A stretch of 64,000 bases of DNA from Hyaloraphidium curvatum SAG 235-1 (GCA_025558095.1 JAIVFI010000021.1:248001-312000), one strand, 5' to 3'. Counted from the first letter of the stretch, positions 1-53,999 are shown. Program-made: numbers and translations. Notes: a model not told the origin generated them from the sequence alone.

Positions 1-351
1 CTGGGCGCCTGCGCCTTTGCCGCCTGCGGGATATGGCTGCTCGTCTCGGACCTCGCCCGCGCCGTCGGCGCGCGGGAACCCCCGCCGCGCGCGCGCCCGG
101 CCGGCGACCCCGCCGGCGGCGGCGTGCCGGGCGCCGGATTCCCGCAGGACAACATCCCCGGCGACCCCGCGCCCGCCGCGGGCGCGGGGGGCGGGTGGCT
201 CGGCGGGCTGGCGGTCACGGGCAGCGCCGGGATGACGGTCTTTGTGCTGCTGATCGTCGGAGCGATCAGGGCGGGGTTGGTGGTGTGGGAGGCGGTGAGG
301 GAGCGGTGCGAGAGGATGCTGCTGGGGCTGGATGTGGACTACTTGGAGTGA
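1..351 (+). CDS. 3' end of a membrane protein (runs off the window start)
   Basis: Frame 1 is open from base 1 (LGACAFAACGIWLLVSDL...GMTVFVLLIVGAIRAGLVVWEAVRERCERMLLGLDVDYLE*), with two hydrophobic segments. Confidence 0.55.
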   Translation: MGACAFAACGIWLLVSDLARAVGAREPPPRARPAGDPAGGGVPGAGFPQDNIPGDPAPAAGAGGGWLGGLAVTGSAGMTVFVLLIVGAIRAGLVVWEAVRERCERMLLGLDVDYLE

Positions 352-4706: not shown

Positions 4707-6422
4707 TTAGATCTCGAGCGAAGCCGAGCGCCTCGCACCCTTCGCAGGCCTCCCGCGACGCCTGCCTCCCCCCCGCGCCGTCGGCTCGTACTCGTCCTCG
4801 GACGAGTCGTCCGCGTCCACCTCGGGCTCCTCCTCGTCCTCGTCGTCATCGTCCCCTTCGCCTCCCTCCCCCTCGAACTCCCCGTCCTGCTCGCTGTCCT
4901 CCACCTCGTCGCTCACCCCTCCGTGCCTCCCCACCCCGCCCGACCCTTGCTCCCCGGCCTCCGACAGCTGCTCGATGGGCCCTTCGGACGACACGCGCCC
5001 GCCCTGAGGGATGTTGAGCCGGATCGGCAGCGGCGGGTGCCGCGGCGCGGCCGGCGACGCCTCCACCGCCCTCCCCGCCTGGCGCCTGACGGTCGGCCGC
5101 GCGGGCTCCGTTTCCTCCTCCTCGTGCGCACCGCCGGCCTTGGACCGGGTGCGACCCGCCGGGGTCTCCTGCGCAGGCGCGAGGCGCGCACCGCCGGTCC
5201 CGAGGATCGGCTCGGGCTTCGTGCGCCGCGTGCGCGTATGCGGGTAGGGCGGGGGCGCTTGGAGCTCGTCACCGTGCAGGGAAGGGGACGTCGAGCGGAG
5301 GCGGGGGATGCCCGATGCGTTGGTGAGGACGCCAGCGGCGGAGTGCGGGGTGGGCTGGTCGATCGGCGAGGCGGGCTTGTCGATCGGGGAGGCGGGCTTG
5401 TCGGTCGGCGAGGCGGGAGGGGCGGGCTTGGGCTTGGGCGGCCGGCCGACCTTGCGCTTGGGCTGCGCCTCGACCTCCTTGGAACCGTTGCCGGGGGCTG
5501 CCTTGGGCCCGCTGGCCGGCTCCGGGGCGGGCGCGGCGTTCTTGGGCGGCCGGCCGCGGGGCCTCTTCGCAGCAGGTGCCCGATCGTCCGCGTACAATGC
5601 ATCCGCGCGTTCGTCCCCGCTGCCCACATGCATGAGTGCGGGTAGCGGGAGCGTCTCGGAGCCTTGGCCGTGCTTGGTGCCGGCGAGCGGAGCGGGCGTC
5701 GCGGGGGGAGCCTTGGCGACCTTGGCGCGGCCACCGGGACCGCGCGGCTCCGGCGGGCGGACCTCGGCTTGCTGGGGCGGGACCGGGTTCTTCCGAGGCC
5801 GACCGGGACCGCGCTTGGCGGGCGCTGCCGGCAAGTCGTCGCCCTGGATGCATCGGTGATCAGTTTGATCAGTGAGTGATCAGCGCACGGACAGCCTCCG
5901 CCTTGCGCCGCGACGCACCTGGAGCAGTTCAGCAATGTCCTCCACATTCCCCAATGCGAGCCCGTCGGCGCCGGAGGCCGCAGGCCCTTTCCCCGGCAGG
6001 GTGTACGCGGCGGGCTGATCGGCGTGAGCCGCGGGCCCCGGCCCCACGGCGACCGTCACGGCGGGGGCCAACGCAAACACGGGAGGCGCCTGGTGCTGCT
6101 GTTGCGGGCCAGGTGCGACCTGGGTTGCCGGGGCGGGGGGCGGGGGCGGCGGGGGCGCGGGGGCGACGAGCCGTCCGTCGGGATACGAGGCGTAGACGGC
6201 CTGCAGCACCTCGTTCGCGGCCCTGGAGCCGTCGCGGGTCGCCTGGAACCAGCCCTGGAAGAACAGCTGGGGCGAAAGGGCGATCTGGTCCGCAATCTGG
6301 GCCCCGGTGAAGCTCTGGCGCAGCGACGCGGCGGCGCCCGCGAGCTCGGGGTTGAGAGGGTCGCGGGAGATGAGAGCGTAGTACGCCTCGTCGGCCGAAA
6401 GGTCGCGGAAGCGGCGCGGCAT
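4707..6422 (-). CDS. multi-AT-hook nuclear protein with acidic tract (at least 2 exons; 3' end uncertain)
   Basis: AT-hook motifs KRGPGRPRK, KRPRGRPPK, KRKVGRPPK and RRRGRPAK. An intron at 5844-5918 joins ORF 5880-6491 to ORF 4707-5834. Confidence 0.65.
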
Positions 6423-27519: not shown

Positions 27520-28938
27520 GGCGTTTGGCCCGCCGGCGCGGGGGGGAGACGGGAGTGCCGGAGCTAGGGGTGTCGTTTTTGGGACAGCAGACTGGCACGC
27601 ACGAGCCGGGTAGTGTCCTCATAGGCCGAGCGGCCTTAGCGGTCGGTCGCGCGGACATAGGGCTGGCGGGTCGTGCGGACATAGGCGACCAAACGCCTAA
27701 CGGGTCGTGCGGACACCGCTTCCCCGCGGCGCAATTGGACTTGGAGCCCCGATTGCCGGCCGCAGAGTGCGCCATAGTACTCGGGAGAGTCGCTGGGCCG
27801 GCGGTCCGGGCGCGCGGAGCTCGTTTGAGGCTGCTGGAGCGCGCTGAAGAGCCTCCCGCCGGAGGGGTCATCGGGACATCGGGGCACCGCTCTCAATTGA
27901 GGGGACTGGAGGCTCCGACGCGACGAGCACTTTTGGTGGTCTATGGACTGCCGCTGAACGGCGTGTCGGTTTTCCGGAAGACTTCGTGCTGGACCGGACG
28001 AGGAGGGATCCGGGTGACCAACGGGCGCGCCGAACCCGTCGGTTTGGCCAGGAAAGCCCGTAAAAGTTGGATCGGCGACGCTTTTGTCAATCGTCATCGT
28101 GATTTGCTACTCGGACGGGCACCTCGCGTCGTCGTACCAGCGTGGGCGGCCCGCCGATACAGCACCTGTCGACCAGACATCGCGGACGCGCTTGTCCCCA
28201 TTCTCTTCATCTTCGGATGCTGCTTTTTGCTTCCAGGAACTTCTCTTTCGAAATGCTCGCGAGCATGGGTCGATGCCAGCATCACTGGGCCCGTCGGCCC
28301 GATTTCAGGTGGGGTATCGAGCGCGACGCTTCTCTTGTCGCTGCATTTCGTCAACATCAACAGCTTCGCTTACGCTTGATTCTGCGTCGGTCGTGTGATG
28401 GCAAACCGGCTCGGAAGAACCACAGTGGAGGACTTCGGCGGGAAACTTCGGTGCTGCCAGGGATCTGGGCCAGCGGCCTCCAATGCCTCCACGAAAGGAT
28501 GGTAACCCAACGAAGCTTCCACTGAATCCGTGGGACGGACGATCGGGCAACAAAGGAGGCTGCTGCCTACATTCGGGGCAGCATTCGCGAGATCGATCGC
28601 GAAATACGTTGGGATTTCGGCTCCGGGCTCCGCAGGCAAGCTTTGGGGTCAATTGCGCACGCCACGCATCGTCCCTAGTCGGTTCTGGCTCTACCTGATG
28701 TAGAATGAGTGCCCGTGACGGTCTACCGCAGCGGCTCCGACCCGAGACATCTGTAGCGCCGCGCACCTCCCCCACGGACCGCGGCGATAAATCAAAGTTG
28801 TCAAAGCTCGAAACATAGCTGGAAATGAAGAATCCCGGGGCCCGCCCCCCGGACCCCCCGGAAATTATTCAAAGTTTGTCACTCGGCCTATGGGTACAAG
28901 GCCACGAGCCGCGCACGCCCGCCGCCGTCCGGCTGCTG

Positions 28939-29006
28939 TCGTATCTAGCTGGCGGGCACCAAAAGTATCATTCGTATCTAGCTGGCGGGCACCAAAAGTA
29001 TCATTC
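28939..29006. repeat. perfect 33-bp tandem duplication
   Basis: tcgtatctagctggcgggcaccaaaagtatcat occurs twice. Confidence 0.92.
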
Positions 29007-29118: not shown

Positions 29119-29216
29119 CTCCCGAACCGGGAATTGAACCCGGGTTGCCGCCGGACAGCGTGTCGAAGATGCAAAGTCTTGACAGGGCGGAGTACTAGCC
29201 ACTATACGATTCGGGA
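29119..29216 (-). tRNA. tRNA-Asp(GTC) with 26-nt canonical intron (29154-29179)
   Basis: Acceptor stem TCCCGAA/TTCGGGA, D arm GTAT-AGTGGCTA-GTAC, anticodon stem CCGCC/GGCGG with loop CT-GTC-A^C, T arm CCGGG-TTCAATT-CCCGG. The intron lies between positions 37 and 38 and contains GACA, complementary to the anticodon. Confidence 0.93.
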
Positions 29217-29559
29217 CTGCTAATCGCTGAAGGTATCGGGAACGAGGGCTCCAGAAATGGTCCACATGAGGAGTTCATGGACCGCTCGCAGCGTGTCCGT
29301 CTTGGACGATCGGCATCCTCTGGGGACGGTGGCGCAGGGCGGGGTCAGGATGTGAGGAGCAGGCCGTCCAGGACGTGGGGCTGGCGACGCTCGGTGGAGC
29401 TCGATGGTCGTCAGATGCCCTTTGGCCACCGTTTATGGGCAGGGTCTGTCTTCACCGGGTCCTGTCCGTGCTCAACATCGCCTGCGCAATAGCTTCCGCC
29501 GCGAGTCAATCCCTAGCTGCCATCCGCTTGCACAAGTCCGCCACCTTCAATGAGCGGAG
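29133..29559. repeat. left arm of 427-bp inverted repeat
   Basis: Reverse complement of 32712-33138. The ORF track gives identical translations on opposite strands (MDRSQRVRL..., MAKGHLTTIE...). Confidence 0.95.
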
Positions 29560-29748
29560 ACGAACGGTCCTCGATCTGCGTCCCTCTGTGCCGTGCCCAA
29601 GATTATGCGCTTTCTGATGAGGATAACAAGCCATTCACTGGTCGATCCATCATTCGACTTGGCAGATAGTAGCGTCAGTTTCTTTTAATCACCGTTTCGG
29701 ACGTCGGACAATTCGTTGTTCAATCCGTACGAAGAGACAAATCCAGAA

Positions 29749-29962
29749 ATAAAGGATCCGGTGGGCATAAAGGATCCGGTGGTCGTCCGGGGCCCGGCGG
29801 GGGAGTTCGTCAACCTGGGTGAGGGTTTGCTGTTGCGGTTGCTTTTCGGAGGGCGGTGGAATGAGCTCCCGGTAATAGAGGGGATCGAGTCCGATTGGGA
29901 CCTGGATTATTGAGCTCCCGGTAGGGGATCGAGTCCGCCGATTGGGACGGACCTGGATTATT
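29749..29962. repeat. short tandem duplications upstream of the DUF707-like gene
   Basis: ataaaggatccggtgg occurs twice (29749, 29767). A ~50-bp unit tgagctcccggta...gggatcgagtccg...attgggac...ctggattat occurs twice (29862, 29912). Confidence 0.85.
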
Positions 29963-30026
29963 GGGACGCGAGTCATCCCCGGGCTTGGCGCCGAAATCCC
30001 CGTCAGGCCGTGTCCTTTGGGCCACC

Positions 30027-31088
30027 ATGTCCCCTCGCAGAACACTTCTCGCTGCGGTGGTGCTGCTCACCCTCGCGGGCGCGGGAACGCTGTGCGCGGC
30101 GCCCTCCCCTCCGCGGGCCCTGCTTATCATCAGCACCGACTGCAAAGCGAATCATGATTCCCGCGACGCCTTTTTCGCGTCCAAGGCGCCGCTGTTGGTG
30201 CCGCGCAGCCGCCGGACCTTCGATATCGCAGCCGTGGATTGGTCGCCCGGTGCGCGGTGTACGGGCCTCCCAGTGGACCGAATCTTCAGGATGCCAATGA
30301 CGTACAAATACCCGGGGGTTTACCGGCTTGCGAACGAACTCTGGCCGGGCATGCTAGACGCGTACGACCTTTTCTTGCTCCTGGACGACGACACGGATTT
30401 TGTCGGCGGGGCCGCCGCGGCGGACGCGCTCTTTGCCCTGCACAGGGCCGCAAACTGGACCATCTCCCAGCCAACCCTGACGGCGACATCGGTTGCAAAT
30501 CACAGACAGTTCCTGGTCCGACCGAATGTTCTGGCCCACGGGGCCGTAGGCCGGCGCATGTCTTTCATTGAGCAGCAGGCACCGGTGTTTACGCGGGCCG
30601 CGCTGCAGAGATACCTGCCCCTGTTCCGCAATGTGACGCACGCATGGGGCCTGGATGTATACTGGAGCTGGGATTCGGCGACGCGCCACCTCGCCCCGGG
30701 CGACTGGGAGGCGGGCAGGGGCGAAATTGCAGCGGCCGTCGACGCCATTGTCGTCTCCCACTACAAGAAGATCTCTGCGGCCAACGCGCCTTACAGGGAG
30801 GGGGGTATCGAGGGTGCGAACATGGACATGGCCAAGCTCTTGAACCGTCTCACGGGGAAAACCGGCCAGGAGCTCACAGACTTCATTGCAGGGGTTTTCA
30901 CGCAGTGGGGACACCCCGACGTGGAGCTTTTTGTTCCGGGGGCGGAGGAGATCCTGGCTAAAGTGCCGGGGTGGAGGAACCCGTCCGCAGCCGTGTCCGC
31001 GGATGTGGGGAACGGTCTGACCGCCAAAGGCGCCGAAAAACCGGCGAAGGGGGGCGGGGCTGTGAGCCAGCAGCCCGCTATGCGATGA
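30027..31088 (+). CDS. DUF707-like GT-A glycosyltransferase, intronless
   Basis: GCCACCATG start, signal/anchor, YDLFLLLDDD (DxD), ISQPTL, FIEQQAPVFTRAAL, AWGLDVYW, VDAIVVSH. Confidence 0.75.
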   Translation: MSPRRTLLAAVVLLTLAGAGTLCAAPSPPRALLIISTDCKANHDSRDAFFASKAPLLVPRSRRTFDIAAVDWSPGARCTGLPVDRIFRMPMTYKYPGVYRLANELWPGMLDAYDLFLLLDDDTDFVGGAAAADALFALHRAANWTISQPTLTATSVANHRQFLVRPNVLAHGAVGRRMSFIEQQAPVFTRAALQRYLPLFRNVTHAWGLDVYWSWDSATRHLAPGDWEAGRGEIAAAVDAIVVSHYKKISAANAPYREGGIEGANMDMAKLLNRLTGKTGQELTDFIAGVFTQWGHPDVELFVPGAEEILAKVPGWRNPSAAVSADVGNGLTAKGAEKPAKGGGAVSQQPAMR

Positions 31089-31320
31089 TCGGTGCAGTCC
31101 CGTTGGGCGCCGATTAGATTCCCGTCCTCAACGTGCCACGGCACAGCGCTTCCTCAGTGACACCAAGGTCAGGCAATGGGTAGATGCGCCGGCCGAGAAA
31201 TCTAGGATCGATGCACCTAACCTACACTTAAGTTAGTTCCCCGCTCTGGACTTTGGGCCGGGTTGGGATCCGTCCAGATTCGAGCCGGTGCCCGCTGCCA
31301 TGTGACCGTATGAAAGACCC

Positions 31321-32442
31321 CTAGATCCCCGCCGCCCGCATCACGTTGTACAGCGCCACCGTCCAATGGCTTGCCGGTCCGCAACCCCCAAGTGCGTAGT
31401 GCAGGCAGTCGGAATCATCCGGCACCACCTTCTCGGCCGCGCTGCGATGCAAATCCCCCCTCAGGGCGGTCGCGGTCGCCACGTCCATGTAAACGACCCC
31501 GGGGAATTCCCGCTCCACCATCTCCGCGATCTTCGCGTTCTGCCCCGCGAACTTGCCCCATGCGAAGGGCAAGGCCCACGCTGGCTCCTGCGGAGCCGAA
31601 AGGGGTTCGAAGATTCGGCTGCAGTTTGCGTGCCCAGGTGGGGTATCCCGCCAGACCACCAGCGCCCGGGGGCGGAGCCGCACCGCCGCGGCAATCGCCT
31701 TGCGCGCCCAAGGGATCCGCAGGTTGTCGGGTTGGTAGTGCGCTCCGGCGTTGAGCACCACGACGGCGGGGTCGAGCCCGATCGCGTCGGCCCACGTCCC
31801 GAGGAACTCGTCGATGCCCAGGAATCGGTCGTCGGAGCTACCCGCGACCAGCGAGGGAGACACGCCGGCGCAACCCCGGGCCGAGGCATTGAACAGCGGG
31901 CCGAGGCGGCACAGCTGCGAGACGTGCCGGAAGGGGAGGTCGGCGGCGACGCGCAGCTGGCCGTCGTTGAAGTTGCGGAGGGCCACCACGCGGGCCGGGC
32001 CGGCGGGCGAGGCGCCGCAGATGTGCAGCGGGGGCAGCACGGGCCGATCGAACGGGAAGCGCGCGGCGTCGGGCGGGTCGGCGGCGCCGCGGGCCCGCGC
32101 CGCAAGCGCCTCGCGCATGTGCAGCTGCAACGAGTCGCCTGCGAGGAGGACGTCGCGGCCGCCGAGCAGCCGGCAGAAGTCGGCGGCGTCGAAGGCGCGG
32201 AACGGCCGCGCCGCGCACGCCGCGGACTGCCACCGCCAGTCGTCGGCGGGCCGCGTCGGCGCGCGCGCGCACGGCCCGGCGTTGCGGCGCGCGCGCGCCT
32301 CCGCGTCGAGGCGCACCCACGCGCCGTGCGCCCAGCAGCGCTGCCACCGCCGCCACGGGGGGGCGGGCGGCACCGCGTGGAGGAACGGCAGCAGCGCAAG
32401 GCCGCCGAGGGCGCACGTGGCCGCGACAAACGCCTGCCGCAT
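31321..32442 (-). CDS. TBL/PC-esterase (SGNH-like) polysaccharide O-acyltransferase/esterase, intronless
   Basis: Signal/anchor, C..GAW..C..WRWQSAAC, FCRLLGGRDVLLAGDSL (GDS), VVVLNAGAHY, VWRDTPPGHANC, DCLHY (DxxH). Confidence 0.85.
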   Translation of the reverse strand: MRQAFVAATCALGGLALLPFLHAVPPAPPWRRWQRCWAHGAWVRLDAEARARRNAGPCARAPTRPADDWRWQSAACAARPFRAFDAADFCRLLGGRDVLLAGDSLQLHMREALAARARGAADPPDAARFPFDRPVLPPLHICGASPAGPARVVALRNFNDGQLRVAADLPFRHVSQLCRLGPLFNASARGCAGVSPSLVAGSSDDRFLGIDEFLGTWADAIGLDPAVVVLNAGAHYQPDNLRIPWARKAIAAAVRLRPRALVVWRDTPPGHANCSRIFEPLSAPQEPAWALPFAWGKFAGQNAKIAEMVEREFPGVVYMDVATATALRGDLHRSAAEKVVPDDSDCLHYALGGCGPASHWTVALYNVMRAAGI

Positions 32443-32711
32443 CCACTGGGTAGGCGGCTCGCTCCCGGGCCGAGAATTCGAGTGGGGGTTCGTCAGCCGG
32501 TATAGGGTTCACGCGGTGTAACACAGCGTTCGCAGAACTGCATCAGAGGAAAGAAACCCTCGGCTCGGTATCGTCCATGGTGTCTGGGACCGAGGAAGAT
32601 ACTGCTTGCTCATTCTCATTGGACAGGTGCACGACAAGTCGAGGAACCGCGGCACGCAGAGACCCATCCTGTGGCGGCTGGACCGTGGCCGGATCGGCGC
32701 CGTCATTGAGG

Positions 32712-33138
32712 CTCCGCTCATTGAAGGTGGCGGACTTGTGCAAGCGGATGGCAGCTAGGGATTGACTCGCGGCGGAAGCTATTGCGCAGGCGATGTTGAG
32801 CACGGACAGGACCCGGTGAAGACAGACCCTGCCCATAAACGGTGGCCAAAGGGCATCTGACGACCATCGAGCTCCACCGAGCGTCGCCAGCCCCACGTCC
32901 TGGACGGCCTGCTCCTCACATCCTGACCCCGCCCTGCGCCACCGTCCCCAGAGGATGCCGATCGTCCAAGACGGACACGCTGCGAGCGGTCCATGAACTC
33001 CTCATGTGGACCATTTCTGGAGCCCTCGTTCCCGATACCTTCAGCGATTAGCAGTCCCGAATCGTATAGTGGCTAGTACTCCGCCCTGTCAAGACTTTGC
33101 ATCTTCGACACGCTGTCCGGCGGCAACCCGGGTTCAAT
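32712..33138. repeat. right arm of 427-bp inverted repeat
   Basis: Reverse complement of 29133-29559. It ends inside the T-loop of the tRNA copy. Confidence 0.95.
33055..33138 (+). pseudogene. 3'-truncated tRNA-Asp(GTC) copy
   Basis: Identical to the intact tRNA, including the intron, up to GGTTCAAT. It then reads ACATTTGG instead of TCCCGGTTCGGGAG, so the 3' T-stem and 3' acceptor strand are missing. Confidence 0.92.
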
Positions 33139-33305
33139 ACATTTGGTCGTGCTGCCAGGTAACGTATTCCGGATGTCCCAACTGTTTACAGGTAGTACGC
33201 AGGCGCGATCTCTTGATTGCATTCGACGTTGAGGAACTTCAAGCTCAGTCACGCGCAGCGCCGTCTCGCAACGGATGTACTCGTTTGCAAAAGGAGACAC
33301 TAAAC

Positions 33306-34274
33306 ATGGACGAACCCGCGTCCAATCCCGCCGACGCGGGAGCTGACGCACCTCTCGCCGATGCATCGCCGCCTTCCGTGCCGGTACCGCCGACGCGCGT
33401 GCTGAAGGACGTGTTGTACTGCGGGGTCTGCACGCTGCCGCCCGAGTTCTGCGAGTTCGACGCCAAGACCCTGCCGCGGTGTAAAGCGTGGCTAAAAGAG
33501 CATCATGGCGACGTGTACGATGTGCTGTACGCGGCCGATGGTGTGTGCTTTGGCCATTGGCCGGATTGCTTCTTCAGTTCCGCTGAACGCGTCCCTTCGG
33601 ACATCTCTCTACCGCTGCCGTTGCCGCTGCCGCAATCAGCCGCAGCGGAGCAATTGAGCCGGGCCTCCTTGGCGGAGGGCGAGGAGCCTTCCGGACCGGC
33701 ACCCGAGCAGGCCACGGCGGAGCCCAAGAAGGATTCCGGAAAGTCCAAGGACAAGAAGAAGAAAACGGTTGGGAATGCCACGCCTGCCTCCATTGGAGTT
33801 CATTGACGTGTTTGCGGCCACATGCTCGGCTCTGATTCGCCTCCTTATCGTTCCACCGTCTCGCGTGGCGGCGGGCTCGCAACAGCCAAAGGTCGTCATC
33901 GAGACCGTTTCGCGGAACAAGCGGAAACATGTCACTATTGTAGTTGGCCTTGATGCTTTTGGTGGGTTCCACCGCCCTCCGTAGCCTCGTAGACCGTTCA
34001 TGGGACCAATCTCGTTTTGCCAGACATCGATTTGAAGAAGGCTGCCAAGACCTTTGCCAACAAGTTCGCGTGCGGCTCCAGCGTAACCAAGAACGCAGAG
34101 GGCAAGGATGAGATTGTCGTCCAGGGCGAGTTTGCCGTGGAGATTGCCGAGATGCTCGAGGACCTGTACTCGAACGTGGGTATTCTGCAGCCGATCCAAT
34201 GTACTGTACTCGAACGTCCCTTCCGCTAGGTCCCACCCGAGGCGATTACGATCAAGGAACCGAAAACAAAGTAG
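33306..34274 (+). CDS. TMA22: translation machinery-associated protein 22 / DENR (SUI1 domain), spliced
   Basis: VLYCGVCTLPPEFCEF, RNKRKHVTIVVGL, IDLKKAAKTFANKFACGSSVTKNAEGKDEIVVQG. Confidence 0.92.
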
Positions 34275-36680: not shown

Positions 36681-37678
<998 letters not shown>

Positions 37679-47983: not shown

Positions 47984-49360
47984 ATGCGTGCGAAATGGCG
48001 CTCGGAGGCATGGAACGCGCTGCGCGTCACCGCGATCCTGGCCGCCGTCGGGCTCCTCGCGCTGTACACTTCGCTGTCCGCGTCGCCGCAGGTGCGCAAA
48101 GACACTTTCCATGCCGCGGAGCGCGTCTTCCGGCCGCATGCAATTCGCCCGGCCGAAACAAATCCTCCGAATGCGGAGGACTATGCGGCGCGCACGCTGG
48201 CCGAGAACCTGCGGCGCGTCGGGCCGTGCCTCGCGCGCGTGGCCGCCGCTGCCGCCGTGCGGAACAGCACCGCAGGCGCCGGCGCCGGTACGCCGGGCTG
48301 CATGTCGCTCTTCGACGTTGGTCCCGGTGGCGCCGAGATCCGCGCGTCGACCGCCGGCTGCGAGATCGAGGGACGCAGGGCGTGCGCCGTTCTGGCCGTG
48401 ATCCGGGGACTCTTCGACGGAAACCCGCCGCGCCTGCACGTGAGCCGCAACTTCTCCTTCTGGCTTTCGACGGCAGACTCCACGATCCTGTCGACCGAAC
48501 AGTACGACGACCTCGGGCTGCCGACGCTGGTGCCGGGAAAGCCCGAGACGGACGTTTGCGGGATACCCGTGCCGGAATCCTACGCCGTCTTTGCCCTCGT
48601 GGGTTCGGATCCGGACCTCCACGCGGGTCTGCAGAGGATGTGCCCGAAGGCGAGCGACACGGGCGGGCCGATCACCTTCCAGGCGGACCTGTTCCGCAGC
48701 TTTCCCAGCCTGGCCGAAGTGCCGTGGGATTCGAAACAAAACAAGGCCGTGTTCGTGGCGCGCTGCTACTCCACCTACACTGTCGACAACGTGACGCTCA
48801 CCGCCAAACCGTTTCCCACGCGGGGCTACGTGTGTCGCGAAGCCTGGTCGGCACCAAACCGCGCCGACCTCGACGTCGGCCTCCTCGTGGAACCTGCGCT
48901 GCTGACCGGGGCGAACAAGACCTGCGCCCCCGACGGCCCGGGAGATCTGTGCAGAATGTGCTTGCCCTGCCGCCGAAAACGCCTCTTGGACCGCCCCGAG
49001 CAGGCGCGCGGTTACCGTTTCCAGGTCGCAGTGGACGGCTACGGGCCGACGTGGGACGCGATCTACTGGAAGCTGGCCAGCAACAGCACCGTATTTGCCG
49101 TGCAGCACCAAGGGGGGGTGCGTTACGCGCAGTGGTTCGGGCCCCTGCTCGAGGAGGGCGCAAACTACATCGCGACGACCGCGCGGGATTTGCCCCGGGC
49201 AGTCGCGGCATGCGTGCGGGATCCGGAGCGGTGCAGGCGGATCGCCATGGCGGCGGCCCGGACCTTCCGAGCGGCGTTCGATCTCGGCCAGATCGAGCGG
49301 TACTGGACGCTGCTGCTTCAGAAGCTGCATGACGGCGACCTTGCCGGGGAGCCGCCCTGA
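47984..49360 (+). CDS. GT90/CAP10-like glycosyltransferase, intronless
   Basis: N-terminal TM segment, VPWDSKQNKAVF, EQARGYRFQVAVDGYGPTW, WKLASNSTVF, QWFGPLLEEGANYI, CRRIAMAA. Confidence 0.8.
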   Translation: MRAKWRSEAWNALRVTAILAAVGLLALYTSLSASPQVRKDTFHAAERVFRPHAIRPAETNPPNAEDYAARTLAENLRRVGPCLARVAAAAAVRNSTAGAGAGTPGCMSLFDVGPGGAEIRASTAGCEIEGRRACAVLAVIRGLFDGNPPRLHVSRNFSFWLSTADSTILSTEQYDDLGLPTLVPGKPETDVCGIPVPESYAVFALVGSDPDLHAGLQRMCPKASDTGGPITFQADLFRSFPSLAEVPWDSKQNKAVFVARCYSTYTVDNVTLTAKPFPTRGYVCREAWSAPNRADLDVGLLVEPALLTGANKTCAPDGPGDLCRMCLPCRRKRLLDRPEQARGYRFQVAVDGYGPTWDAIYWKLASNSTVFAVQHQGGVRYAQWFGPLLEEGANYIATTARDLPRAVAACVRDPERCRRIAMAAARTFRAAFDLGQIERYWTLLLQKLHDGDLAGEPP

Positions 49361-49694
49361 AGGAAGGCCGCGTTGGAATGGCACCCGCTGCTCTAGGCCG
49401 GCTCGGTGTGATAGGCAATGACAGGGAAGCAGGAAAGTGGATGGTCGCATGAACACTTGTCCACGTCGGAGGCACAAAGTGCTATGTCGGTCGGTGTCCG
49501 TCGCATAGTCTTATACATATTTCAGGGACCGCACTCTTTGCCCGTGATCACACGTTCCGGTGCGGTTGAAGCGCCGCCTCCGTCTACGAGTGATTGGACG
49601 AGCGCAGGCCAGCGCACAGACAGCGTTCCTTTTCCGAGAAAGGTCGCCCTCCCGATGGCCGCGCTGCTCGACCGGGCGACGGCCGACGGCGATG
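48390..49694. repeat. left copy of ~1.3-kb direct repeat
   Basis: Aligns with 52700-53999. It covers the 3' two-thirds of the GT90 gene, the intergenic DNA and the first 13 codons of symplekin (MAALLDRATADGD). Confidence 0.93.
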
Positions 49695-52699: not shown

Positions 52700-53719
52700 T
52701 TCTGACCGTGATCCGAGGACTCCTCGGCGGAGACCCGCCGCGTCTGCGCATGAGCCGCAACTTCTCCTGGCTTTCGACGGCAGACTCCACGATCCTGTCG
52801 ACCGAACAGTACGACGACCTCGGGCTGCCGACGCTGGTGCCGGGAAAGCCCGAGACGGACGTTTGCGGCATACCCGTGCCGAAGTCCTACGCCGGATTCG
52901 CCCTCGTGGGCTCGGATCCGGACCTCCACGCGGATACAGAGGATGTGCCCGAACGCGAGCGACACATGCGGCCCGAGCCTTCCAGGCGGACCTGTTCCGC
53001 AGCTTCTCAGCCTGGCTGACGTGCTGTGGGATTCGAAAAAGAACAAGGCCGTGTTTGTGGCGCGCTGCTCCTACACCTACACGGTCGACAACGTGACCCT
53101 CGCCGCCAAACCGTATCCCACGCGGGGCCACGTGTGTCGCGAAGCCTCGTCAGCACCGAACCGCGCCGACCTCGACGTCGGCCTCCTCGTGGAACCTGCG
53201 CTGCTGACCGGGCCGAACGGGACCTGCCCCCCCGACGGCCCCGGAAATCTGTGCAGAATGTGCTGGCCGTGCCGGCGAAAACGCCTCCCGGACCGCCCCG
53301 AGCAGGCGCGCGGTTACCGCTTCCAGGTCGCCGTGGATGGCTACGGGCCGACGTGGGACGCGATCTACTGGAAGCTGGCCAGCAATAGCACCGTGTTTGC
53401 CGTGCAGCACGAAGTGCGTTACGCGCAGTGGTTCGGGCCCCTGCTCGAGGACGGCGCAAACTACATCGCGACGAGCGCGCCGGATTTGGCACACGCAGTC
53501 GCCGGATGCGTGCGGGATCCGGAGTGGTGCAGGCGGATCGCCATGGCGGCGGCCCGGACCTTCCGATCGGCGTTCGATCTCGGCCAGATCGAGCGGGACT
53601 GGACGCTGCTACTTCAGAAGCTGCATGACGGCGGCGTTTTGGGAGGGACACGCTGGGCGAAGGCCGCCCAACAACGGCACCCGCTGCACTTGTGCCGGGC
53701 CCGGCGTGTTCGGCAATAG
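52700..53719 (+). pseudogene. 5'-truncated, frameshifted copy of the GT90-like gene
   Basis: Homology to 47984-49360 starts mid-gene and is split across three frames (ORFs 52708, 52863, 52943). Confidence 0.88.
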
Positions 53720-53999
53720 CATCGGAACCTGCGGTCGCAAGAGGCTAGTCGACCCAACGCTCTGCCCGCGTCAGAGGCACAAAGGTCTATCTTGGTCCGT
53801 GTCCGTCGGATAGTCTTATACATATGTCAGGGACCGCACTCTTTGCCCGTGATCACACGTTCCGGTGCGGTTGAAGCGCCGCCTCCGTCCACGAGTGATT
53901 GGACGAGCGCAGGCCAGCGCACAAACAGCGTTCCTTTTCCGAGAAAGGTCGCCCTCCCGATGGCCGCGCTGCTCGACCGGGCGACGGCCGACGGCGATG
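52700..53999. repeat. right copy of ~1.3-kb direct repeat
   Basis: Aligns with 48390-49694 and runs into the intact symplekin start. Confidence 0.93.

Follow-up and report, generated by a model that had tools for sequence, protein, structure and literature searches.

In the Drosophila melanogaster group, 17 of 29 inversions are accompanied by unique flanking sequence that has been duplicated in inverted orientation; the median length of these duplications is 321 bp (range, 46 bp to 1.9 kb), and in 12 inversions only one breakpoint is duplicated (Ranz et al., 2007; PMC1885836). In yeasts, transfer RNA (tRNA) genes are replication-fork pause sites and fragile or rearrangement sites, as is mentioned in PMC4556013 and PMC8998199. 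Two further kinds of bounded segment bear some likeness to the structure described below, namely the bacterial and archaeal tRNA islands, in which short direct repeats of the 3' part of a tRNA accompany an integrase, and the Hin, Gin, Fim and yeast 2-micron FLP switches, in which inverted repeats bound a flippable segment. The present analysis concerns positions 29119-33138 of a 64,000-nt stretch of DNA (hereafter the window, meaning the whole stretch analyzed) from Hyaloraphidium curvatum SAG 235-1, where two identical, oppositely oriented arms, each holding most of a tRNA-Asp gene, enclose a segment with two genes. Hyaloraphidium curvatum is an early-diverging, monoblepharid fungus, and the source genome is nuclear and comprises 31.9 Mb in 55 contigs at approximately 65% GC. 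The data favor, with a probability of roughly 0.7, a model in which the locus is the scar of a young chromosomal rearrangement, either a small inversion or an inverted duplication, at a tRNA-gene fragile site. The locus is thus a clean new case of an already known class of rearrangement, and it gives no evidence that mobile or phase-variable glycan cassettes exist as a class of their own.

As in the Drosophila inversions, a segment is bounded at its two ends by inverted copies of ancestrally unique DNA, the duplicated length of 427 bp is within the reported range, and no repeats or transposons lie at the breakpoints. The locus differs from those inversions in that its segment is approximately 3.2 kb long, whereas theirs are chromosomal, in that one break falls inside a tRNA gene, in that the ancestral order is undocumented here, and in that the copies are identical, whereas theirs are approximately 88% identical. 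Like the fragile sites of yeasts, the breakpoints occur at tRNA genes transcribed by RNA polymerase III (Pol III) and recur at many loci of one genome; unlike in yeasts, where synteny breaks and Ty or long terminal repeat elements beside tRNA genes are mostly seen, the homology boundary lies inside the body of the tRNA gene, and local duplications of half a tRNA plus its flank are present at approximately 60% of the loci sampled. To our knowledge, local half-tRNA-plus-flank scars at most of the tRNA loci sampled in a genome have not been described. As in tRNA-targeted integrative elements, a partial tRNA copy ends a gene-bearing segment beside an intact tRNA gene, but the repeat here is inverted and consists of the 5' 84 nt of the tRNA gene plus 343 nt of upstream DNA. 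As in the invertible switches, inverted repeats bound a segment that could in principle flip, but the arms, as long segmental duplicates, are unlike the short sites on which recombinases act, and a flip would swap no promoter or coding sequence. Unlike both the islands and the switches, the locus has no recognizable enzyme of its own, as no recombinase, integrase or transposase domain was found by Pfam in the scanned open reading frames (ORFs) of at least 100 aa, either between the arms or in the flanks.

The tRNA-Asp gene and its truncated copy

The two arms, at 29133-29559 and 32712-33138, are each 427 nt long, are 100% complementary and are spaced 3152 nt apart, and in the repeat search this pair was the sole inverted repeat of at least 60 nt in the 64-kb window. 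A genome-wide search with the arm recovered exactly two copies of it in the whole 31.9-Mb genome, both of them at the tRNA-Asp locus. The left arm consists of tRNA gene positions 84 to 1 followed by 343 nt of tRNA-upstream DNA. The complete tRNA gene occupies 29119-29216 on the minus strand (RF00005, 47.2 bits, Rfam) and is identified by ARAGORN, with introns allowed, as tRNA-Asp(gtc) with a 26-nt intron at position 38, that is, after position 37. This gene is intact, with acceptor and T arms that close and a run of five T residues following; its positions 1-84 lie within the arm, and its last 14 nt lie outside. The right arm carries only a tRNA-Asp pseudogene (33055-33138, plus strand), which comprises the first 84 of the 98 nt, is truncated within the B box in the T loop and is not followed by a terminator. 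This copy ends after GGGTTCAAT in the T loop, where unrelated DNA begins, and without the last 14 nt its acceptor and T stems cannot form and it scores below the Rfam threshold. Both tRNA copies face outward from the segment. No target-site duplication is present at the outer ends of the arms, where the flanks differ (...CCGGGA on the left, ACATTTGG... on the right).

The first-pass annotation of this DNA, made from the sequence alone, had described mismatch-free reverse-complementary arms of 427 bp, each composed of the 5' 84 nt of an intron-bearing tRNA-Asp gene plus about 340 bp of its upstream DNA, with the tRNAs pointing outward and no transposase or integrase between the arms. All of this was borne out by measurement, with 84 plus 343 nt per arm, the left tRNA on the minus and the right on the plus strand, and none of the enzymes named among the scanned ORFs of at least 100 aa.

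Because searches with the 5' exon of tRNA-Asp (allowing up to 3 mismatches) and with the whole gene (BLAST) matched only in the intact gene and in the right arm, the intact gene is apparently the only tRNA-Asp(GTC) gene of the genome and, as the apparently sole copy, is presumably essential. The truncated copy (33055-33139) keeps its A box and, by chance, 9 of 11 B-box positions (GGTTCAATAC), as counted against the consensus. Without a terminator, and situated in the leader that is transcribed from the gene for the density-regulated translation factor DENR, this copy might still bind TFIIIC.

Independent read evidence was taken from Logan contigs of short reads, comprising one RNA run of the organism (X1) and two environmental metagenomes (X3 and X4), of which one is a soil and the other a freshwater sample. 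Both metagenomes contain contigs that bridge the right outer junction, 33138/33139, as shown by X3 record 13 (32998-33215) and by X4 record 16 (32991-33192). The right inner junction, 32711/32712, is bridged by a spliced RNA contig (X1 record 5) that extends 86 and 93 nt on either side. A further RNA contig, X1 record 6, which covers DENR, stops exactly 30 nt (k-1) inside the right arm, as is expected of a de Bruijn graph in which the same words have two continuations, one being the full tRNA and the other the right flank. For the left outer junction, support comes from the perfect tRNA cloverleaf.

Partial tRNA copies elsewhere in the genome

The 10 kb around each of 19 other tRNA genes (L007-L025), which constitute a sample of the loci in this genome rather than all of them, were compared with themselves. 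At 12 of the 19 loci, a partial copy of the tRNA lies within 5 kb, with the homology boundary inside the tRNA gene, whereas random intervals of the same size at the same loci contained a boundary in a mean of 0.77 of 19 and a maximum of 5 (2000 draws). These partial duplications are direct or inverted, are 30-850 nt long and are 80-100% identical, and at most of the 12 loci the homology runs into the flank, so as to join the 5' part of the tRNA with upstream DNA or the 3' part with downstream DNA. The boundaries fall mainly near the anticodon stem-loop and intron region, with some in the D arm or T loop, and show no fixed site. Each locus uses its own tRNA and its own flank. It follows from these observations that tRNA genes are recurrent duplication breakpoints across this genome.

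Among the inverted cases, the tRNA-Met locus L014 holds a 357-nt inverted repeat of 98% identity that starts at tRNA position 42, the tRNA-Thr locus L016 holds one of 304 nt at 91% identity, and L010 and L017 have shorter inverted copies. Tandem or direct copies of 93-98.5% identity are present at L012, L013, L023 and L008. L013 further contains a perfect direct repeat of 847 nt (L013:37-883 and L013:4162-5008) with both ends inside tRNA-Arg genes. On the left, the repeat ends within tRNA-Arg(acg) (19-145, minus strand), 18 nt from its 3' terminus, and on the right it ends within tRNA-Arg(cct) (4977-5050), at position 32. Between the two copies, the spacer of 3278 nt lacks any Pfam domain, and part of it matches a stretch of contig C39 at 75% identity. 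The first-pass annotation had held that, if the orientation were unique and fixed and no analogous tRNA-bounded cassettes existed elsewhere, the locus would be reduced to a one-off inversion scar. Analogs are indeed present, but as breakpoint scars that vary in geometry and content, not as a family of cassettes.

With regard to the tRNA gene set as a whole, approximately two thirds of the tRNA genes found by Rfam in the genome are 81-127 nt long, and therefore most of the tRNA genes found carry introns. Several isoacceptors are apparently single-copy, and the set is unusual for a fungus.

Origin of the inverted repeat

To set out the proposed rearrangement, the left flank and arm are denoted X and R, the right arm and flank R' and W, the 3152-bp segment M, and that segment in reverse M'. 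The X-R and M-R' junctions are best taken as ancestral, because the tRNA is intact across the former (29132/29133) and a transcript is continuous across the latter, while R-M (29559/29560) and R'-W (33138/33139) are best taken as the new junctions. The left arm is then the ancestral copy and the right arm the derived one. The model proposes that a staggered break occurred in the T loop of the tRNA-Asp gene, where the two strands would have been cut 427 nt apart, one between positions 84 and 85 of the gene and the other 343 nt upstream of it. A second break would have occurred approximately 3.2 kb away, beside the DENR gene (M'-W), after which the segment between the breaks may have been rejoined in reverse and the 427-nt overhang filled in at both ends, thereby converting X-R-M'-W into X-R-M-R'-W. 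An alternative route is template switching during replication, at a fork that had stalled within the tRNA gene, which would leave the same structure. We infer the ancestral order, the chemistry of breakage and fill-in, and the cause of the fragility itself, which by analogy with yeasts may be the collision of Pol III transcription with replication, or fork pausing.

Several features fit an inversion of this type, in that the arm is otherwise unique, only one of the two breakpoints is duplicated, the length of 427 bp is typical of such duplications, no repeat or transposon is found at the breakpoints, and tRNA genes recur as duplication breakpoints in this genome (12 of 19 other loci). The presence of one complete gene together with one dead 84-nt copy would be explained if only those outcomes survive that keep the presumably essential tRNA-Asp gene intact. 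More generally, as tRNA genes here are mostly single-copy and breaks would persist only where an intact copy is kept, selection for duplicative outcomes may be expected. The first-pass annotation had offered two readings of the locus, one of them an inversion by staggered breaks at a tRNA fragile site and the other a tRNA-anchored cassette, and of the two the former is the better supported. Its judgment that the event was very recent is likewise a reasonable one, as the arms show 0 differences in 427 positions, compared with identities of 80-98% in analogous repeats elsewhere. Nor is the rearrangement confined to the sequenced culture, since the new junction 33138/33139 is present in the two environmental metagenomes. 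An efficient homogenization of repeats in this genome is argued against by the wide spread of repeat identities at the other loci.

A number of observations weigh against this model or against its details. The junction 29559/29560 is given by the assembly alone, and no read set covers it. Two exact-pattern scans of metagenome contigs for an ancestral or empty site, one with the edge of the right flank (just right of 33139) and one with the inner end of the arm, returned 0 hits, and the genome collection holds no relatives of this genome, so that no outgroup or sister strain shows the ancestral order. The unwinding over a long distance that staggered breaks 427 nt apart would need is a difficulty noted by Ranz et al. 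(2007; PMC1885836). Gene conversion could give an arm divergence of 0, in which case the event would not necessarily be recent. Further, one or two positions of low depth in the right-arm copies of the metagenomes do not agree with the reference, which weakly hints that the duplication predates some of the divergence between strains; if so, gene conversion would have to keep the arms identical. Exact-protein look-ups with gene 1 and gene 2, the two genes of the segment, led to no other assembly.

A first alternative, which is considered unlikely, is that the segment is invertible. In this scenario, the identical arms would let the 3.15-kb segment flip by homologous recombination, so that both orientations would be mixed in a population and a regulation resembling phase variation might result. 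Inverted repeats of this size are recombination substrates in fungi, the perfect identity of the arms could reflect continuing exchange or gene conversion, and the plus-strand spliced transcript that now exits through the right arm toward the truncated tRNA and DENR would, after a flip, lead to the intact tRNA. However, no recombinase was found in the scanned ORFs, both genes hold their own upstream DNA inside the segment (467 nt for gene 1 and 269 nt for gene 2), such that a flip would move no promoter, and the other tRNA-anchored inverted repeats of this genome have drifted to 85-98% identity, which suggests that homogenization is inefficient. The short-read contigs are neutral on orientation, as the junction words are the same in both. 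Occasional flipping of the segment by homologous recombination is physically plausible, but the phase-variation reading of the first-pass annotation is unsupported, as is a dedicated switch.

Going beyond the inversion scar at a single fragile site, it is conceivable, although improbable in our estimation, that a lineage-specific process of breakage directed at tRNA genes, whether a nuclease or recombinase acting on these genes or an extreme Pol III-linked fragility, keeps generating half-tRNA-plus-flank duplications, small inversions and insertions in this genome. Such a process would relocate neighboring genes, and filler DNA left in the anticodon loop might be tolerated in the form of tRNA introns. 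If true, filler DNA at anticodon-loop breaks could help to explain why most tRNA genes here carry introns.

An assembly artifact, in which a single arm was duplicated or a fold-back chimeric read was built in, is very unlikely. Perfect identity of the arms would be expected of such an artifact, and the inner left junction, 29559/29560, has no independent read support. However, two copies are required of at least 141 nt of the arm, one continuing on the left into the 3' end of the tRNA, where a perfect cloverleaf forms, and the other on the right into the DENR flank, the latter in two unrelated metagenomes. The end of the DENR contig k-1 nt inside the arm is that of a true branch, and the diverged analogs at many tRNA loci show that structures of this type are real in this genome. 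The junction contigs, the branch stop in the RNA and the intact cloverleaf together thus make a single-arm artifact very unlikely.

The least likely explanation of all is a mobile or gene-capture cassette, with the arms as terminal inverted repeats around two captured glycan-modification genes and the enzyme encoded elsewhere, since, although inverted terminal repeats do surround a cargo without a mobility gene of its own and other tRNA-anchored, repeat-flanked inserts exist (for example, the 3.3 kb between the 847-nt direct repeats at L013), the arms are absent from the rest of the genome, no target-site duplication is present, the left "terminus" is part of a resident functional tRNA gene with its native upstream DNA, the arm content differs from one tRNA locus to the next and so offers a transposase no common end, and the cargo genes are single-copy, with old, dispersed and unpaired paralogs. 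The gene-capture reading of the first-pass annotation is therefore unsupported.

As the probable scar of an inversion or inverted duplication, the locus provides a clean, undecayed example of how such a rearrangement is born, with all four junctions intact and two of the four shown in independent data. One break lies inside an apparently single-copy, presumably essential tRNA gene, and DENR would thereby have gained new upstream DNA, including a dead piece of tRNA with a largely intact internal promoter. It is the youngest inverted case in a series in which approximately 60% of the sampled tRNA loci are scarred, with scars of all ages. The genome thus offers a natural system in which to study tRNA-gene fragility and the reshuffling of gene neighborhoods, and perhaps also how tRNA introns and tRNA-seeded repeats arose.

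Genes and transcripts at the locus

Between the left arm and gene 1 lies non-coding DNA (29560-30026) that is single copy in the genome and whose left end is the putative new junction. Within it, at 29863-29962, there are two adjacent copies, of approximately 50 nt each, of the motif GAGCTCCCGGTA...GATCGAGTCCG...GATTGGGAC...CTGGATTATT. Gene 1 (30027-31088, plus strand) encodes a DUF707-like protein with a hydrophobic segment at its N-terminus, predicted to be secreted or membrane-anchored, and with a DDD motif at residues 120-122. The match of the protein itself to DUF707 (PF05212) scores 23.0-23.2 bits, below the cut-off of 24.1. An exhaustive search returned 269 relatives, and in an alignment of gene 1 with 24 of these (E 1e-41 to 5e-8) the DUF707 match was found in 21 of the 25 sequences, the best at 2e-15, and the DDD motif was invariant across all 25. 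Gene 1 would thus appear to be a divergent member of DUF707 or to belong to a sister family. Its product is probably a glycosyltransferase of GT-A-like type, the type to which DUF707 is linked; a profile search with the family returned no PDB match. The sole identical database protein is a hypothetical protein of Hyaloraphidium curvatum, and contigs C17 and C9 encode paralogs of 38-41% identity.

Gene 2 (31321-32442, minus strand) is convergent with gene 1 and encodes a protein of the PC-esterase family (Pmr5/Cas1p/TBL-type acyl-esterase) with a signal peptide. It matches PC-Esterase (PF13839) at 28.2 bits, above the cut-off of 27, and corresponds to an annotated 373-aa protein for which, as for its relatives of 42-48% identity, PF13839 is precomputed; its neighbors in the protein atlas are PC-esterase clusters. 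Paralogs of gene 2 are found on contigs C43 and C5. For each of the two genes, two or three paralogs of 38-47% identity lie on other contigs, where those of one gene do not accompany those of the other. In a single further data point, a metagenome contig (L027) with a relative of gene 2 that is 41% identical, no DUF707 neighbor was present. No other ORF of at least 100 aa between the arms has a Pfam domain.

The segment had been described at first pass as holding two convergent, intronless genes, a DUF707-like glycosyltransferase and a TBL/PC-esterase. The convergence and the esterase assignment stand, whereas the DUF707 match falls just short of its cut-off and a 3' intron is included in the public gene 1 model, of 335 aa. 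This intron is not seen in the RNA, as the contig 30008-31898, which covers gene 1, is colinear with the genome and has 0 differences from it.

The spliced transcript that crosses the right inner junction (X1 record 5, 32378-32804, plus strand), as far as it is assembled, runs in antisense from inside the 5' end of gene 2 through 32711/32712 into the right arm, and has two GT..AG introns (32482-32535 and 32567-32625). The spliced sequence contains no long ORF in any frame. It could belong to DENR as a long 5' leader, could result from read-through of gene 1, or could be a non-coding RNA that led to tRNA-Asp in the ancestral arrangement. Downstream of the right arm, the start of the DENR gene lies at 33307-33700 on the plus strand (DENR_N, 58.5 bits), with an intron at 33540-33638. 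The RNA contig over it, X1 record 6, comprises 33109-33539 and 33639-33700 at a depth of 287, and on its upstream side includes 30 nt or more of the truncated tRNA copy.

On the other side of the locus, the 1.6 kb downstream of tRNA-Asp contain no credible ORF, and the one ORF scanned there, at 27525-28379, has no Pfam domain. Between an LMBR1-like gene and tRNA-Asp lies a non-coding repeat element of 1.29 kb (~27610-28903) with short inverted ends (CATAGGCCGAG / CTCGGCCTATG). Further copies are present at C2:567050-568309 (96%), C14:253919-255191 (87%) and C21:668891-669743 (70-85%), the last of these being approximately 600 nt from another tRNA gene, and the element or its paralogs are transcribed (X1 records 1-3). 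A transposon-mediated inversion by alternative transposition was considered and rejected, as this nearest repeat element ends at ~28903, 215 nt from the tRNA and off all breakpoints. A 33-bp unit is perfectly duplicated in tandem at 28939-29004, 115 nt downstream of the 3' end of tRNA-Asp, and is another very young local duplication beside this gene. Neither the tandem nor the 1.29-kb element touches a breakpoint.

Two further observations concern the remainder of the window. ARAGORN, with introns allowed, reports a tRNA-Ser(cga) with a 66-nt intron at 37466-37630 on the minus strand, which has no Rfam match at the gathering score and may be either a false call or a long-intron tRNA. In addition, a 1.3-kb direct repeat of 89% identity is present at 48390-49694 and 52700-53999, its copies lying 3 kb apart.

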